Part shown: positions 7,550 to 16,700 of the stretch, piece by piece
Layout of the letters: each line of letters opens with the position of its first letter
Numbering within the stretch: the stretch's first letter is position 1
Source: Vitrella brassicaformis CCMP3155
Lineage: Eukaryota; Protista; Chromerida
Reading direction: 5' to 3'
NCBI GenBank assembly: GCA_001179505.1
Contig: CDMY01000657.1
Span: 1 to 35,762 of the forward strand
DNA: 35,762 bases
The notes under the pieces: generated by a model
The model's input: the letters and a program-made list of their open reading frames with translations, nothing else
The model's database searches: none
What the model was told of the DNA's origin: nothing
Made by a program: the position numbers and the translations under genes

Positions 7550-10489
7550 TGATGGCGGATTTGTGGTCAGCGTGGCGCACGAGCCACGAGCCCCAAAAGA
7601 GGCGCCATGAAGAGGACGTCAAGAGCCGTGCTCGCGGCCGCCAACACCCGTCTGCGGTGGAGGCGCACGAGGACAAGATGCGAAGACACAGCTCACATCC
7701 GCTGCTGCAGCCAAGACCGGCCACGGCCCAGCCAAGAAGACAGCAGTTCCACGAGGCCTTCCTATCACGGGCAACAGAGGGGCTTGCCGACGAGAATGGG
7801 GGCGGAGTCATGCTGCTGCACCAGCTTGGAGACAGTCGCCGCGCCGTCCACTCAGACGACCCAGGCGGGAAGACAACAGAAGATGCTGAGACGGCCAAGT
7901 GGCGGCAGCGGGATCTCAAGAACCTCGGGGCGGATAAGAGGCCGTGGACATCTCTGGGCAAGGGAGCGGCCCATCGGATTGGGATGGACCGTGCCATCAC
8001 GTCTCGAGCCACCTACAGACAGACGTGCATGGCCAATCTGACGGAAGAAGGAATGCGCGAGGAGCTGCAGAGGTGGGAGGCCGAGAAGACGAGGCTTCTG
8101 CAGGACCTCGATGCCGCCCGGGTGCTGGCCAAGCAGTGGGAGCGGCAGGCAGACGACCTCAAGCGAACCCTGACTGAGAAAGACGAGGAGATCTCGCAGT
8201 GGCGAGCCCATGTAACGGTGCTGAAGCGGCGTGTGCAGGGCCTATCTGACCGGCGGCTCGAGACAGAGAAATCGCTGCATGAGGTGGCGGTCCTCAAGCC
8301 TCTATTCAATGAGGTATCGAAGAAGGAAGAGACATATGAGCTAGCTGAGCGCTGGTGCATGTCTCTCTGTCTGTCTGTGTGTGGGCTCGGCTCTTGTATG
8401 TAAGCTGGCAACGGAGCTGAAGCTGCAAACACCTCAAGAAGTCATGAGTCGCATCGACGAATTGGAACGAAACCAATTCAACATGCTCCAGCAAATACAC
8501 AGGTTGGTCCGTTACAGACCGGGATGTAAGTTGCTTATTGTCTGGTTATGTTGCACCCTTTCGTTCCCCTCTCACCTTACCCCTTCAGCATGGATGAGGA
8601 GAAGGAGCAGGTAGAGGCGGCGCGTCAGGCCCTGCAGAAGCAGCACCGCAAGGCCACCGGCTACATGCAAGACAGACTCGTGGCGTCATACGAGGTCATT
8701 GAGAAGCAGCGGCAAGAGCTCGAGAGTGCCGAGGAGCGCGAGAGCGCCAAGTCTCTAAGGCATAAGGATCTACTGGAGCAGTATCTGAAGCTGAGTGACT
8801 ATTGCTGGTGGATGCTCTCTTTCTGGGCCAAGAAGGCGCAGTGGGGGCGAATCAAGAAGGAACCCTCCATCATACTGCAGGACCTCAAGTCGAATCTCAT
8901 CTACAAGTAATTAATGAGACATAGAGAAATCTGTGTATTCTGGCAGCCGCATGGATGCACGAATCCATGGGTGTTTGCGGATTGTGTCCCTTCTCGATAG
9001 GCACGGCTCCATTGCGGCGGCCTTCACAGCTTACAACATCCCCGTGATCGAATCGCTTCACAAGGATGACTTCGCGACGCAGCTGCAGAAGTTCAAAATC
9101 GGTGCCGCGGACGCCGGCAAGATTTTTGATTACTTGCCGGACAAACGGAAGGTGGACGAGACCTACTTCGCGCCCGTGGGTCCGATGACTGCCAGGCCAA
9201 TATTCACACGCACAGCAGCACCCGCGCCTGTAGAGGCAGCCCAGGCCACAGAAGGGCCAGGAGGAAAGGCCTCTCCCCCCAGCCCCCTCTCTTCGGCACG
9301 CCCCTCGTCTCAGAACAGTGCCAGGCCCATCTCGCCCTCCCAGCCGCATGCTCATGCCGGCAGCAAGCCTGCCTTGCCCCACTACCACCCGAGAGAGAAG
9401 ATCTTGGTGATAGCGATGAAGGACTTCCAGCGGCACTTGGAGGAGCTGTCTTTGCCTCGACCGCTGGAGGGCATCACAGCTGATGTGCTGCTGGAGAAGC
9501 CCCTGGACATTGCTGTGAGGGACTTCAGGCCCAACGCTTACGATCCCCTGGCAGCACTGCAGGCAGTCCATCAGCTGCTGACGGTGTCGGAGAGGTCACA
9601 GAACACACAGCAGCTGCAGGGTCGGTCAGGAAGGCAGACAGAGACAGACGCCAAATGGCCGGCCACTTTGCACGTGTCTGTCTGTCTGTTATATTTATGG
9701 GCATGTATGTATTCAGAGGTGATAGTGTACGCCAATTCTTTGTATCGCCACTTCTTCCCCAATGCCGACCTAGACAAACGCTTCAAGCCCACTGAGATCC
9801 TCAAGACGGTGGGAGAAGTGCTGAAGCGCAAGGAAATGCAGATCACTGCGGACCACAACAAGACCAGGGATGCCCAAGTCAAGACACACGAAGCCAACAA
9901 GGAGCTTGACAAGCTGCGGGGGGAGAACAGACAGCTCAAACAACAGGTGAAAATCTCGTGTCGTGTCTCTCCAGGAGTCGATCGATCGATCGCATACATG
10001 TCTCTCTGTCTGTGCGTCGTGCGTCTCTCTCTCTCTTCTGTGTGTGTGTGTGTGTGTGTGTGGTGTCTCTGTGTGTGTGTGTGCAGATTGACAAGTTGCA
10101 GCGTCAGCTGACGTCGCTGTTGGGCAAACAGCTGAGGGTGCAAAGGCAGATGGCAGAGTCACACTGACTGGTGTGCGTGAGACCTGGTTACCCATCGATG
10201 AGTGCTGTTCGTCTGTCCCTCTGCCGTACGTGTCTGTTGCCTTTCCTTTGGCTTGACTGACTGGGCAGCTTGCTTGACTCACCTAGGTGCATTCATTCAT
10301 TGCTGCCTGGGCTCCGATCGCAGCAAGGCAGGGAGGGAGGCCGATACATGTTGGGTTGCGAAACGTAGTCCAATCCATGTATGTATGTATGTATGTTGTG
10401 TGTATTTGTCGCTCGTTGAAGATACGTACATGCAGACCCTTCACACGCACAAGTCCGTCATCGTAGTGGACAATGCGGTCCGGCAATGA
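7550..10489 (+). CDS. Large coiled-coil protein with a probable degenerate EF-hand pair; function unknown
   Basis: Exons about 7550-8313, 8405-8502, 8590-8906, 9001-9620, 9717-9947, then 10087-10167 (stop) or 10087-10137 plus 10436-10489. Long E/K/R/Q heptad stretches. LKSNLIYKHGSIAAAF...LHKDDFATQL...AGKIFDYL resembles EF-hand-like helices. Start codon uncertain (7538 or 7550). Confidence 0.7.
10039..10062 (+). repeat. (TG)n intronic microsatellite
   Basis: Perfect TG run just upstream of the 3' splice site at 10086. Confidence 0.9.
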
Positions 10490-10612
10490 ATGCAATGCAC
10501 CACACAAAGCGACAGAGAGGGCCAGCAACGAATGCGACAGCAGCCCAGTCCAGCATGCACAGCTTTTGAGATCTGACACGTGCATTGTCCGTGTGGAGAC
10601 ATGAACGAATCC

Positions 10613-13539
10613 TCACTGGTCGATCAGCAAGCTGACATTAGGTGCCTGCGGTAGATACACACTGCCGGCAGGGGCCTGCGGCACCACCACGCTCCCTGCC
10701 GGTGCAGCAGGCATCGCAGCACTCACGTTGGGCGCGCTCGGAAAGAACATACTGTCGGCTGCTGTCGGCATGGCCATGCTGACATTGGGCGCTTTCGGCA
10801 GGAACACACTGCCGGCAACAGCCGGCATGGCTACCCCTGCGGCCGGTGCGGGCGGCATGGCGACAGAGGCGCCAGGTGCGGGGGGCATGACGATGCTGCT
10901 CTCTATCTCTCCCCACAGCTCGTCGGATGAACTTTGGTTCCTCTCGGCGGCCTCAGTGTGCTTATGGTGAAGTGCCGATGCCGGTGGACCTGTGGCCGTC
11001 TGGCGCTCCAGCTCCTCCATCATTTCTTCCGTCAACAACCGCCTACACACACACACACACACACACAGAAAGATGGAAGAGAGACACCCATGCAAGACTA
11101 GCGCTCGTGTGATGTGCTGACCAGTCGGTGAATGGCTCTCCGGGAATCAGCGTGTGAAAGATATGTTGACGAGCCTCGATGTCCTCCTTGTCACCGTAGA
11201 CGATGGCGGTCTTGACCTTCTCCTCGCTGCTCACCGCACTGCAGTCCAGCCACCGGAGGTGCGGCAGCCGATGAATGACCTGCATGCGGTACGCTGGCAC
11301 ATTCTCTATCGCCATTGGGGTCAGGAACAAATCGGTCAGCAATGGTAGCTTCGCCAATAGCTCCAGCTGTGCATACACATTTAAGGCGATGACGGAGAGA
11401 CAAAGGTGTCTCTGGCTGGCTCGTTGTCTATTCTCGCTCACTTGGGCGGGATGCGTGAAACGGTTGTTGCAGAGGTGCAGGGTGATGAGTTGTGCGTGTT
11501 GGCTGCCAAGCCCCTCTACCGAGTCGAGCATGTTGTCGCGGACATTGAGCTCACGCAGCTTGGTCAGCCGGCAGACACCTCCCTTCCCCTCAGCTGCCCC
11601 GCCCTCAGCACCACCCGCCAGGCTGACCAGCTGGTTGCCGCTCACGTGCAGCTCCTCGATGTTCAGATCATCCAAATTGTCAACGTAACGCAGCTGGTTC
11701 TCTGCCATTAAATGACACGAGGGAGGGGAAGATGCAAACGAGCCACGCACGCACGGACAGACATTTGGTGGGTTCATCCGTGGTCGCGTGCACCTGAGAG
11801 GTCGAGTGCTGTGAGGCCCTTGTTGGCGGCCAGGCCCTCAGAGATGGCAGAGATCATATTCCCGCGAAGATTCAGCTCTCTGGACAGACACAGACAGAGA
11901 AGCCATGAACCGCCATACATACATACTGAGAGGCCGACCTGGCCACATGTGTGTCGTTTGCTTTCCGTGTCTCTGTCTGTCACCTGAGGAATCTGTGGCT
12001 GGAGAAGTCGCCAATGGCCGTGATGTAGTTATATGAGAGGTCGACCACCTCCAGCCGCTGTGAGAAATGAAACCCGATAGAGCGCCGCAACATGTTGTGG
12101 CTCGCATTGACGTGACGCAGACGTACAAGCGGATACAGCGAGCAGAGCGACCTGATGCCAACACGCCGCCCACGCGCAAGAGACGCGAGTCAGTCAGTCC
12201 AAAAGGCACACAGCCACCTGCCTTCCTGACGTACCCACCTGAGCCGATTGTGCGAGACATCGACGTACTGCAGGTTGATGAAGGCCTCCAGGGGATCGAT
12301 TGTCGTCAACCCCATATCACCAAGGTCAGCCTGAAAGCCACACAAACGAAGGATAGTCGTGTATGTGCATGACTTACTGACTCCCCCCTTCCCCCACCTA
12401 CCCACCCTGAGATAGGCGTGCGATCCGTCGGGTGTCGGTCCAAGCAGTGACAGCCGGGATGGAATGTCGGCCACGGTCAGCGGTGTCTCATCGGCCTCCA
12501 TCACCACCATTTCATCCAAATTCTTCAGACGGTCGATCTGCATGGAACAACGACAAAAGAATTTATGGGAGGGGGGGGGGGACTTGTGCGTAGAGACACT
12601 CTTTAGAACGGAGCTCACCCTCAGAAGGCCGGATGTGCCATCCACGGCAGACGGCGGCCGGCGGTCGAAGTCTCGCTGCAGCTGCTCTAGCCGCTGGTCC
12701 TCAAGTTCACGAGCCGCTAACCTGATTAATCATCATCGCACTAGCGATCAGCGGCTTCCATGACGGATGTCCCTGTGTGTACGATCCTACCTCTGTCTCT
12801 TCTCCTGCTCAAGTGCATGTCGGTGTCCACGTGCCAGCTCTGCCATCTTCCTGAGTACGTCCCCCATAGTTGTCGCTGGTGTCATGCCCCCACCGGCCGC
12901 AGGTGCCTCGCTCGGTGACACACAGCACTCCAGGTATCCCTGTGCACCAATCTCCCTCAGCAAGTGGCGAATGGTCTCGTCGTCGGCTGGCTGACCCTTC
13001 GACATAGCGGCGTGGGTGTCCACGAGCCTCACGAGCATCACAGGGACCGTCAGCCCCATTCCTCGCAGCATAGGCACCCACTTGTCGCGAATCCGGCAGT
13101 AGTCAACAGGCGATGAGTGGATGAATGCTAGCGCCTCGGTGACTCTCAGGACAGGGTAGTTCTGCCTCCCCACTCTCCCACCCACGTCAAGGGCCGCCGC
13201 AGAGGCACCCTCTGACTCGACTCCTGCCTGCACCGAACGGGTTGCATCTGACTCAGCGACCTCTTCTTCTCTCCACGCTCTGTAGTCGAACACTCTCACC
13301 GACACCGTCTCCTCCGCTTTGCCGTGAGCCGCCTGTGTGCCTCGGGAGGAGACTACCACATCGGTCTTGAATGAGGGAAGCGATGATTTGGACGTGAGCT
13401 GCTCGGGGACCTCGATGGGCTGTGTGCGGTCGCGGCTCTTGGCGAAGGGATGCAGGGGGATGAGGGCTCTCGTCTGCGCTGACTGGACCTCCTCGCTCGA
13501 CGCGAAGAAACACAGACGGTACTCGTCATCAAACGACAT
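10613..13539 (-). CDS. Rho/Ras-like pseudo-GTPase domain + coiled coil + LRGUK/LRRC23-like leucine-rich repeats + Pro/Ala-rich repeat tail
   Basis: Phase-consistent exons 13539-12791, 12721-12619, 12537-12406, 12330-12239, 12151-11984, 11879-11794, 11701-11442, 11366-11122, 11042-10613. GTPase-like segments: [39 protein letters not shown]. LRRs: LQYVDVSHNRL, LRHVNASHNML, LEVVDLSYNYI, LRELNLRGNMI, LTALDLSENQL, IEELHVSGNQL, LRELNVRDNML, LITLHLCNNRF. LRR cap: YRMQVIHRLPHLRWLD..EEKVK. Confidence 0.8.
10630..10870 (-). repeat. Imperfect coding tandem repeat (MP..A.GS.(F/Y)LP.APNVS-type units)
   Basis: The APNVS-encoding block recurs at about 10632, 10722 and 10779 (spacings of 90 and 57 nt, both multiples of 3). 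Confidence 0.75.
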
Positions 13540-13789
13540 GCCGGCTGCCGCCGCCAGGGGGAAGCACGCCTGACAGACGCCTTGCAATGGGGGCCTTTGC
13601 AATGCTTAAGCTCGCGGCCCCCAGCGTCTTGTCGTCTCCGTTGGATGGAGCCTGAACCTGTGAGGGATCCACTGCGCCAACAAGGCTCATGTGGTACCCC
13701 CAAATCCATCACTTAACTAAGGATCATGATCGCTTGCCAATGTACTGTGGCGGGGGCTCTGTACTCAGACGTGTTGCGCACTTCAGAGG

Positions 13790-16700
13790 ATGGGAGCGAG
13801 CATTCAGCAAGCATCCCTTCCCCACCCGACCTTCAACTTGACACCCTCGTGTCAAGACACATATTCAGGCAAGCAAGGAAGAAGAGACGGCAACAATGCA
13901 CAAACGTTGCACATTCATGCTTTCAGGGACCTTCAGCATGACCTCTCCCGGGTGCAGTCCTATCCAACGAAGCTGCCTACATCTGCCGTTACACCACAGA
14001 AGCTGGAGCTGAGGCGGCGACTCGTCCAGCAGCACACAAAGCCGCCCCCGAAGCTCAGATCACGACCGGCCAACCCCACGGCTGCTGACAGCCGACGACC
14101 GCAAGACAAGGGAGGGGGAGTCGTCAGCGAGCATGGGTCCAAGGCTCGGGGAGTCAATAAGAGAGACAAGGCGATTGACAGCCCCCCATCGCCGCCCCAG
14201 CATGTACGGCCTGGGCGTGCCGACGGTCCTCTCAAGGGGGCTGGTGACGGCGATGTGTTCGCGAGCGTGGTCAAGAGACTCAGACTCGTGGAAAAAGAAA
14301 ATGCCGAACTGAAGACAAGGCTGGCGGACAAGGTGTGGATGAGAACCGTCAATTTTGCTTGTGGTCAACCCTTCTTGCATGGTGCAGGAGAAGGACCTCG
14401 CGGCGATGTGCGAGAGGGAGCGATTCCGTGAAGACATGTTTGACGGTTCCGTAGCAACCGATGCAAATGTTGAGAGGGATGATGGCGGTGCGGTCCGTTT
14501 GGCGTACAAGTATTTGGAAGAGAAGAAACAGCTGAAGAATGAGGTACACAGGTGAGGGACGCCTCCGTTCCCGGACTATGGGACACCCAACCATCTCTCT
14601 GATGTGCAGCTGGCAATTATGCGCAAGTACTTGGCATCCTATGGAGTGACATGGAATGAAGGCGGGCGAGACACCGATCTAAGGGCAGCAGATGAGCTGT
14701 CCATCGCCAGCCTTGGGTATCAGGGGGAGTTTGATGCTGAAAGGGCGCTGCAGGACCTCAAACAGACCGAACGTGAAGGAAGAGACCAAAGGTGAGACGA
14801 TACTCGCTCCTTTCGGGGAACAAGCGGTGGATACTGCATGCTGTCTCAATCATTTGCTGCTCCTCTCAGGTTCCGTCCTCCTTCGTTGTTGGATAAGGGC
14901 CACCCCGTTCAGCGTCATCGGCGTCTCCACCTGAACCGATGCGTCTCCAACCCTCCGGAAAACAGCGACACGCCCGCCCCCGCTGCACCCTTCCCCCCGC
15001 CCCTGTCTGCACGGGGGCCTAGGGAGAAACCTCACGCACCGCCATCATACATGGGCGGCAAACGGTGGTATCCGCCAAGACATATCGGCCCCCTGCAGCC
15101 ACTGGATAACGAGGGTGCTGCTGCTGCTGGAGTTTCGGATGTGCTGCTATCACCAATTCATGAGGAGCGCTCATCGGCTCACGAGCATGCGCTGGTCGAC
15201 TTCAACAGAATACAGCGGGCGGTGGCTGAGCTCAACCTCATGGCCGGTGGGTGCGTCAGCGCTTGCAATGAGAGCTGGCTGTCGGTCTCCCCACTGACGT
15301 GTCTCCTTTGTATGCAGGCGAGGATGAGCCAGCAGATGCAGCAGACGATAGAGAAGAATCCGATCTCTTTGTGCAGTCCTACGGCATCATGCGTCTCCGC
15401 CACTCACCCAAGCCTGCTGCTGCTGGCCCCTCACTTCCTCTCATCTTCTACTCGAATGGTCTTCATCTGGATCCTTTGCACCGGCCGTTCTACCCGTATT
15501 CCCATCCGCAGAGTCAGCAGATCCTGCGAGACATACTGGAGGGCTACTTCCCATCTGTGCTGCAGCAGACGTATCCTGAAGGAGGTGAGGACGCCACCAA
15601 GAACCTCACGACACAATACGCAGACGTACGTCGCATGACATATCCTTCACGCCCATCTTGTGTATCAGTTGCCCTTGCTCCCATAGACAAGACGCTGACA
15701 GAGTACCGCCCCGACGCTTCTGCAGTCACTGCGAACTTGCGCGACACGGCCGGCTCGCGAGTGTGTTATGGTGATCAATGGCGCAGGTTCCCTGAGGTAG
15801 CCCCACTCATCGAGCGTCAGCAGCAGCCGCACATCGACCAGGGACTCAGACGAGTCACTAACAAATCCAACAAGGTAATTTGCTCACAGAAACAGGAGAG
15901 TTTTAAACTTGGCGCGTACGCTTTGCTCTTCAGGATCAATTTCTGCAGCGGCTACCGAAGCGTGTCATACGAGGGGGTAAGCAACCTAAGAAAATCGAGC
16001 CATCTTCGTTTTGTGTGTCCGTGTCTGCACGTGTTGGATGGATGGATGGATCGATGCATGGCGTGTATGCAGGGGTGATAGTGGAAGTGCGTTCTGAGAT
16101 AGCTCGGCAGCTGGACCACCAGCCCCTGCCCAACATTCTCCATCACACGCCGAGGCAAGGCAGCCAGCAGCAGAGGAGAGAACAGTGCGCACGGGCCGCA
16201 GACGCGCGGATTGGGAGTGGTGCTGTCGCTCCTGACACGGATAGCGAAAGGCAACGCAGGCTGCGCATCCAAAAGGAGCCGAGAAGGACCCCTGCCCATC
16301 ATGGGCTGAGGAATGGTGTACGGCTGCGTGTGCAGTGCAGGGGCTGGGACGAAATTCCGCCGACAACAGCGCCGCTGGAGATCGAATATGATGTAAGGAT
16401 GTGTCAGTGTATGTCTCCGGCCTGTGTGTGATGGATGTGTGTTCTGCATGCAGTCAGCGTCTTGGTCTAGAGCCACCATCGAGGAGCTTATCAGCGCCGT
16501 CCTTGACAACCGGTGAGTAACCGAGGGATGCTCAGCAACTCACACAGTGAGGAATGACTATTGTGATGTTGCTCAGGTGCGATTGGGTGAGACAGGGCTC
16601 ATCGGCCTGTGATTTGGTGTTCCCATCTGTGAGGCCGCCCCACGTCGTCTCACGCATCACACTCGCAAGAGACGCGGGTGGAGACACATCGACAGTGGCG

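Follow-up and report, generated by a model that had tools for sequence, protein, structure and literature searches.

LRRC23, LRGUK and FAP246 are all axonemal proteins with leucine-rich repeats (LRRs). FAP246/LRGUK has been assigned to the C1b projection in the central apparatus of cilia (bioRxiv 10.1101/2021.06.16.448709; PMC8175508). N-terminal Rho domains in multidomain proteins are also known, as in RhoBTB (PMC4931677), and so are pseudoGTPase domains, which p190RhoGAP carries (PMC5593906), and combinations of LRRs with GTPases. No Rho orthologues were reported from alveolates in a study where Plasmodium was the only one sampled (Rojas et al., 2012; PMC3265948). Here we analyzed a gene of Vitrella brassicaformis CCMP3155 whose product joins a degenerate Rho-like domain to LRRs of the LRRC23/LRGUK type. 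It lies on the minus strand (13539-10613) of contig CDMY01000657.1, of which the 35,762 nucleotides analyzed are hereafter called the window. In the literature that we found there is no description of a pseudoGTPase-LRR protein in dinoflagellates or chromerids, nor of LRGUK/LRRC23-type LRRs preceded by a Rho-like pseudoGTPase, and the family to which this gene belongs is undescribed there.

The Vitrella protein is the chromerid member of a myzozoan family built from a Rho-derived domain, a helical linker and LRRs, and we consider it probable that it acts as a nucleotide-independent scaffold in a flagellar complex. The evidence presented below supports the derivation of its N-terminal domain from a Rho-type G domain that has lost its P-loop.

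Gene structure and Rho-like domain

The gene, read from the minus strand of positions 10400-13800, was assembled by hand into nine exons with consistent phases and an open reading frame (ORF) of 754 aa, and all eight introns are bordered by GT-AG. This model is identical in sequence to the public protein CEM28748.1 (A0A0G4GGI8), which UniProt labels by its LRR cap only, and it bears out the extent of exon 1 (13539-12791) proposed in an earlier, sequence-only reading of this DNA. Within exon 1, the region from G3 to beta6 (aa ~118-215) is, judged from its sequence, homologous to Rho-type GTPases. A phmmer comparison of exon 1 with PDB sequences gave 128 matches at E<=10 (best E 0.0025), and the best 60 of these 128 were all RhoA, RhoC, RhoB, Rac, ROP, Cdc42 or TC10, covering Vitrella aa ~116-212 against Rho residues ~63-166. 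Two segments that had earlier been likened to Rac/Rho were among those aligned to RhoA/Rac/Cdc42. Comparison with the dinoflagellate relatives described below gave stronger scores: hhalign against a profile of their domains matched aa 137-207 with a probability of 94.5% (E 7.8e-8), a hidden Markov model (HMM) of the second half of their domain scored aa 130-250 at 31.5 bits with hmmsearch, where none of 500 shuffled sequences reached even 8 bits, and BLASTP against the closest family member, P0071, aligned aa 118-330 (E 6e-14).

In structure predictions the C-terminal half of the domain resembled Rho-type small GTPases, and the N-terminal half of the six-stranded, five-helix G fold was modelled at low confidence. 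From the single sequence, AlphaFold2 (AF2) gave no usable fold of the domain, with a predicted local distance difference test (pLDDT) score of 33. With an alignment of 17 family sequences, pLDDT rose to 63-85 at aa 135-250, where strands were predicted at 137-141, 167-174 and 199-207 with helices between them, followed by a long helix at aa 221-249, where a coiled coil had been suggested in the sequence-only reading. When this alignment-based model was searched with Foldseek, the top 50 PDB matches were all Rho/Rac/ROP (from E 3e-5), which is the G-domain result that the sequence-only reading had expected from AlphaFold and Foldseek on the N-terminal ~250 residues. VIA-align returned only small GTPases, Rnd1 first, with Z up to 9.4 and 120-150 residues aligned. 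A second model, independent of the AF2 prediction, was the ESM-Atlas prediction, made for the entire protein and considered here for aa 1-250; all six of its structural matches belonged to the Ras superfamily, with RhoC first, template modelling scores of 0.57-0.60 and 176-184 residues aligned. The sequence of the linker that continues the long helix (aa 221-284) is not conserved in an alignment with the dinoflagellate relatives.

The gene model was compared with transcript evidence by aligning contigs of public runs to positions 10300-13900. Three runs contained about the exonic share of the words sampled from the gene stretch, and exactly at modelled introns their contigs carried seven joints whose ends read CT..AC, corresponding to GT..AG on the minus strand. 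A single 2772-nt contig from run X5 extends from 13517 through every exon to 10408, in the 3' untranslated region, and spans the eighth intron too, where a repeat was skipped in the alignment. In runs X1 and X6, 9-nt overhangs at the border of exon 1 match exon 2, and the contigs extend upstream of the ATG to 13579-13588 with no additional joint. Because the X5 contig spans all exons and the X1 and X6 contigs have no extra joint, the LRR exons share one spliced molecule with exon 1, which undergoes no further splicing. The Rho-like part and the LRRs are thus encoded by one mRNA. Both junctions singled out for checking in the sequence-only reading (12791/12721 and 12619/12537) are carried by spliced contigs, beside six further GT-AG introns, and the phase-consistent splicing it had proposed between the N-terminal domain and the LRRs is confirmed by the 2772-nt contig. 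An (AC)11.5 microsatellite at 11045-11067 adjoins the acceptor of intron 8, and junction 8 is visible only via the flanking pieces of the contig. Upstream of the gene, separate contigs from runs X5 and X7 cover 13688-13900, one of them with a 255-nt loose end at 13869, and may represent a divergently transcribed neighbour with a plus-strand ORF at 13790-14431.

It could be argued that the resemblance of exon 1 to GTPases is due to chance, or that exon 1 belongs to another transcript and the gene model is an artefact. Pfam indeed found no match in exon 1 or in either of its halves, even at E<=10, and an exhaustive phmmer search with exon 1 of 1.84 billion representative proteins returned only the Vitrella protein itself (100% over exon 1). 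However, phmmer against the PDB, hhalign, the second-half HMM, Foldseek, VIA-align and BLASTP agree with each other, the single contig is spliced through all exons, and the relatives carry a recognisable Rho-like domain at the equivalent position. We regard this explanation as extremely unlikely. The features of the gene are listed in Table 1.

Table 1. Features of the Vitrella gene, in window coordinates
Feature	Residues (aa)	Position	Strand	Content or basis
Whole coding sequence	754 in total	10613..13539	-	Exons 13539-12791, 12721-12619, 12537-12406, 12330-12239, 12151-11984, 11879-11794, 11701-11442, 11366-11122, 11042-10613
Exon 1	1-250	12791..13539	-	Degenerate Rho-like G domain and start of long helix
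ASSEEVQS, expected place of the P-loop	13-20	13480..13503	-	Position only; opposite family GDxGxG[QH]S in 2/3 MAFFT runs
DVGG, probable retained G3 (DxxG)	118-121	13177..13188	-	BLASTP against P0071; one MAFFT run
beta4-alpha3-beta5-alpha4-beta6 of G fold, demonstrably Rho-like	127-215	12895..13161	-	Family second-half HMM, hhalign, AF2 pLDDT 63-85
DKWVPML segment	within 127-215	13066-13086	-	
G4 remnant RLVD		13018-13029	-	
G5 remnant ECCV		12919-12930	-	
alpha5 into long charged helical linker	221-284	12619..12879	-	End of exon 1 and exon 2, intron 1 inside; AF2
N-cap motif, ~9-10 LRRs and LRR cap, LRRC23/LRGUK type	301-611	11122..12489	-	Exons 3-8, introns inside; Pfam LRR_4, LRR_9, LRR_8
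Exon 9	612-754	10613..11042	-	Conserved RLLTEE motif, Pro/Ala-rich degenerate-repeat tail, stop codon; no Pfam match

Related proteins in dinoflagellates

A search with the LRR region returned seven proteins of 957-1139 aa (44-45% identity, E 1e-58 to 1e-67). Pfam recognised an N-terminal Ras domain in six of them (E 1e-9 to 1e-18), the seventh being N-terminally truncated, and the best PDB matches of this N-terminal domain are all of the Rho family, with RhoA at the top (6.6e-20 over residues 8-178). The same domain order is found in dinoflagellate proteins, and the architecture is not the unrecognised orphan it had first been taken for. After further searches the family grew to more than 25 clusters, including many marine transcripts; the named members are all dinoflagellates (Symbiodinium microadriaticum, S. 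necroappetens, Symbiodinium CCMP2456, CCMP2592 and Y106, and Yihiella yeosuensis). In a profile search, family members scored 528-1780 bits and the Vitrella protein 789 bits, and all other LRR proteins stayed at or below 210 bits. The Vitrella LRRs are 43-47% identical to those of the dinoflagellate family, and the protein has the features that define it, namely a Rho-like domain without the P-loop lysine, the LS.LG.T...HAYLR motif, about nine LRRs with a cap, and the RRLVTEE motif, which reads RLLTEE in Vitrella.

The Walker-A lysine is absent from all 20 members in which the N-terminus is present, its place being taken by Q, H, N, A, L or Y, so that the loss of a canonical P-loop predates the extra decay in the Vitrella lineage. 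Among the other motifs, DxxG and ECSA are mostly kept in the family, and G4 usually reads L[KRQ]xD. With LRGUK-like proteins as the root, a tree of the LRRs shows Vitrella as the sister of the dinoflagellate clade, which fits vertical descent from a myzozoan ancestor. The search for the same fusion in other proteomes, suggested by the sequence-only reading, was thus positive for dinoflagellates; no Chromera, apicomplexan, ciliate or perkinsid member was found in word-limited searches or in a metagenome scan, which is not proof of absence.

Most dinoflagellate members (P0002-P0008, P0057-P0070) continue from residue ~600 to their end with a module of ~450 aa (CMN..CACS.GNPM.LTEFYFDD, LTGC.AVGQ), which had no match in Pfam, the PDB or the Atlas and appears to be an uncharacterised domain. 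When the window was translated in six frames, an HMM of the C-terminal part of the family found nothing, and this module is missing from the Vitrella protein. A tblastn match of the module at 14550-14726 (E 0.009) was not reproduced by this HMM and was treated as chance. P0071 (549 aa; L001 106-1755, a marine metatranscriptome contig) is a complete short member that ends just past the LRR cap. It has the two-module layout of Vitrella without the ~450-aa module, yet is nested inside the dinoflagellate clade.

Three Symbiodinium records (CAE7369399.1, CAE7565626.1 and OLP78266.1) are automatically annotated as LRGUK or 'leucine-rich repeat and guanylate kinase domain-containing protein'. In the proteins scanned with Pfam, namely the Vitrella protein (P0001) and relatives P0002-P0008, no guanylate-kinase-like domain (PF00625) was detected.

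Nucleotide motifs and the proposed flagellar scaffold

The family as a whole is without the Walker-A lysine. In the scenario that we favour, the Vitrella copy has decayed further: P-loop glycines, [NT]K at G4 and SA at G5 have all been lost, only DxxG has been kept, and long insertions, predicted with low confidence, have been gained in the switch I / beta2-beta3 region. The Rho-like domain would no longer cycle nucleotide and would most likely serve as a scaffold or a fixed site of protein-protein interaction, positioned by a helix beside the LRR solenoid, which in turn would dock the protein in a flagellar (axonemal) complex of zoospores. We infer both the mode of action and the flagellar site from sequence comparisons. 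The sequence-only reading had likewise proposed a nucleotide-dead Rho-fold scaffold on a flagellar LRR protein; the Rho derivation, the lost P-loop and the single mRNA with LRRC23/LRGUK-type LRRs hold, and the flagellar part stays an extrapolation from LRR similarity.

Several points weigh against this scenario. The spliced contigs were taken as cDNA from their intron-less form, the run types not being on record as RNA. The loss of nucleotide binding is deduced from motifs only, and the flagellar role is drawn from an LRR similarity of about 29-30% identity to LRGUK-type proteins, in a context where SDS22-type LRRs also serve non-ciliary partners (PPP1R7/SDS22 matched the LRR domain at 4e-14). 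In addition, an HMM of the first half of the dinoflagellate domain scored Vitrella aa 1-117 at -0.2 bits, the same as shuffles, hhalign of the N-terminal half against the family gave a probability of 0.13%, and in the alignment-based AF2 model pLDDT was below 50 (about 25-35) over aa 26-134. On the basis of these models, aa 1-117 may be a disordered stretch that does not complete the fold.

These last observations would suit a half-relic, in which at most the beta4-beta6 part still folds, the ~120-130 residues before it are intrinsically disordered, and the LRR domain works alone with the decaying remnant as neutral baggage. The composition of aa 26-134, rich in A, S, V and E, points the same way, as does the unstable alignment register, with three MAFFT runs disagreeing on the placement of G1 and G3. 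However, the residues aligned by ESM-Atlas and VIA-align across aa 1-250 are more than the C-terminal half could supply, half of a Rossmann-like sheet is unlikely to be stable alone, and the ORF is intact and expressed. We therefore consider a half-relic somewhat unlikely and retain the Rho-derived scaffold as our interpretation, with the small-GTPase register demonstrable over aa ~118-215 and, contrary to the earlier claim for the whole of exon 1, unconfirmed over the first ~117 residues.

The place of the P-loop illustrates this difference. Since aa 1-117 has no detectable signal, the equation of ASSEEVQS with G1 made in the sequence-only reading is positional, and it received no significant support from the family HMM, hhalign or a position-specific scoring matrix (PSSM) test. 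Around this site AF2 predicted, with low pLDDT, a strand (aa 10-12) and helices (aa 15-26). In the ungapped PSSM test, a gap-free alignment from Met1 gave 9/28 identities and beat shuffles (p~0.007), but it was far outscored by the best match of the test, an unrelated site beginning at aa 305. This site is the pre-LRR motif LSLLGPTPDGSHAYLR (aa 305-334), which outscores the true N-terminus against the family P-loop block CLLGDPGTGQSAFLR. We took this likeness as a chance resemblance, and it warns against trust in short motif parallels.

A regular-expression search of the entire 754-aa protein found no GxxxxGK[ST], GK[ST] or [NT]KxD, leaving the protein without the G1 P-loop of the Rho family, and the residues aligned with G4 [NT]KxD and G5 SA[KL] are RLVD and ECCV. 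The claim that all nucleotide motifs were replaced holds for the P-loop and for [NT]KxD; G3 was most likely kept. It had been placed at DYRA (aa 85-88), which is probably wrong, as this would require an insertion of ~30 residues in switch II. The BLASTP alignment with P0071 begins at DVGG, opposite DSAG, and one MAFFT run (A3) places DVGG opposite the family's FTDNxG. DVGG is the only DxxG in the protein and its spacing to beta4 is near normal, and by these alignments G3 is probably retained there, with the Rho catalytic Gln after DxxG changed to Arg.

Nucleotide binding has been reported for some atypical Rho proteins, and the family domain could bind GTP, GDP or ATP without the P-loop lysine, as a switch that is permanently loaded or regulated in some other way. 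Many dinoflagellate members do keep P-loop glycines and the Ser/Thr, DxxG, the Asp of G4 and ECSA, and Vitrella keeps DVGG and the G4 Asp. However, the lysine is missing from every member with an N-terminus, and Vitrella retains nothing of the P-loop, nor [NT]K at G4 or SA at G5. Non-canonical binding is in our opinion quite unlikely, and a domain that has ceased to bind nucleotide would better agree with the motifs.

The flagellar part of the scenario is based on the LRR domain, whose whole-domain PDB matches are LRRC23 (9fqr_Xm; 4e-22 over aa 301-583), LRGUK (9ijj_4P; 2e-21 over aa 317-603) and Chlamydomonas FAP246 (9e-15). The start motif LSLLGPTPDGSHAYLR aligns to the N-cap motif LSLLCKTGNGLAHAYVK of LRRC23, in line with an earlier remark that the start of the LRRs recalls LRRC23/LRGUK, and the 9-10 repeats with a cap agree with the 8-10 first counted. 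The Vitrella protein thus has the LRGUK/LRRC23-type LRR domain, with N-cap and cap, expected of LRGUK proteins. An alternative is that this domain is a general SDS22-like adaptor (e.g., for a phosphatase or cytoskeletal partner) with no axonemal role, since many LRR proteins besides PPP1R7/SDS22 score well (4e-14 and below). However, these other LRR proteins match repeat-wise, LRRC23, LRGUK and FAP246 are the only ones matched as one continuous span from the N-cap through every repeat to the cap, and LRGUK-type proteins were the next-best database matches to the LRR region after the family itself. A non-flagellar scaffold is in our view rather doubtful, and an axonemal site for the Vitrella protein would be the better candidate.

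The LRR domain of Vitrella also contains a Gly/Ala-rich insertion of 12 residues in LRR7 (aa 473-484; exon 7, ~12088-12123, coordinates approximate), which is missing from all dinoflagellate relatives, LRRC23 and LRGUK. The Pro/Ala-rich tail (aa ~655-754; 10613-10920) is built of ~10-aa degenerate units (AMPxAPxxSV) and shows no conservation among the relatives, and Tandem Repeats Finder detected a repeat with a 30-bp period at 10823-10893.

If the scaffold interpretation is true, a small GTPase would have turned into a lineage-specific, nucleotide-independent scaffold, along a gradient of decay in which dinoflagellates lost only the P-loop lysine and Vitrella almost all motifs. The results also correct database names, as Symbiodinium 'LRGUK' proteins lack a guanylate kinase domain and the name of the Vitrella protein reflects nothing but its LRR cap. 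An axonemal location, if true, would make the protein a new, lineage-specific addition to a conserved LRRC23/LRGUK-type module. To our knowledge, Rho GTPases are generally considered absent from apicomplexans, and the family places a Rho-type sequence in their alveolate relatives. A bolder version, which we find unlikely, is that a Rho-type GTPase has survived as this family in Myzozoa, a group from which Rho GTPases are reported missing, having been captured before dinoflagellates and chromerids split, deprived of its Walker-A lysine and turned into a nucleotide-free axonemal subunit (central apparatus or radial spoke 3), with Vitrella as the end-point of decay.

Comparison with known systems

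Rho GTPases (RhoA, Rac, ROP, Cdc42) are the best sequence and structure matches of the Vitrella domain, which shares with them the alpha3 'KWxPE/L' and 'GYxEC' segments and the beta4-alpha3-beta5-alpha4-beta6 order. It differs by the absence of the P-loop, [NT]KxD and SAK, by long insertions in its N-terminal half and by a Rho insert, the helix between beta5 and alpha4, that is ~8-9 residues shorter and, as in the relatives, largely missing (phmmer alignments with RhoA open gaps of 5+4 residues for Vitrella and of 8 for the dinoflagellate P0008). Unlike Rho GTPases, the domain is internal to a 754-aa protein, where it is followed by more than 500 residues, and there is no CAAX box at the C-terminus (...LLIDQ). 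The alveolate Nd-GTPase is described as a single-domain small GTPase with a conserved GxxxxGK(S/T) (PMC13739732). We set it apart as a relative by this description, canonical and stand-alone versus multidomain without a P-loop.

Rnd1/3, RhoBTB, the pG1/pG2 domains of p190RhoGAP and CENP-M are G folds without some catalytic or binding motifs that work as fixed interaction modules, as the Vitrella domain would. CENP-M came up in the nearest clusters of a language model with a score below 0.9, which makes it a lead only. In contrast to Vitrella, where the partner is an LRR domain, the pseudo Rho proteins are combined with BTB or RhoGAP, sequence kinship is at the superfamily level only, and the distribution of the Vitrella family is myzozoan and not Amorphea. 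ROCO proteins (LRR-Roc-COR) also combine LRRs with a Ras-like domain, and the LRRs of Chlorobium Roco have a high repeat-wise score. However, the G-like domain of Vitrella precedes the LRRs, is Rho-like instead of Roc-like and has dead nucleotide motifs, and Pfam found no COR domain (PF16095) in the protein.

The LRR domains of LRGUK/FAP246 and LRRC23 align end to end with that of Vitrella, including the N-cap TPLT..LSLL..HAYL/V and the cap. LRGUK has a guanylate-kinase-like domain after its LRRs and no GTPase-like domain, and LRRC23 has 340 aa and no G domain. The contrast drawn in the sequence-only reading with both ROCO and LRGUK was therefore justified by the domain order and by the lack of COR and guanylate kinase domains. 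The closest counterparts are the dinoflagellate 'LRGUK' proteins (CAE7369399.1, OLP78266.1, Yihiella EP00933_P011371), which share with Vitrella the Rho-like domain without the P-loop lysine, the pre-LRR motif, the LRRs and RRLVTEE. They differ from it in that their G domain is still recognised by Pfam as Ras and in that most of them carry the ~450-aa module, whereas Vitrella has a Pro/Ala-rich tail.

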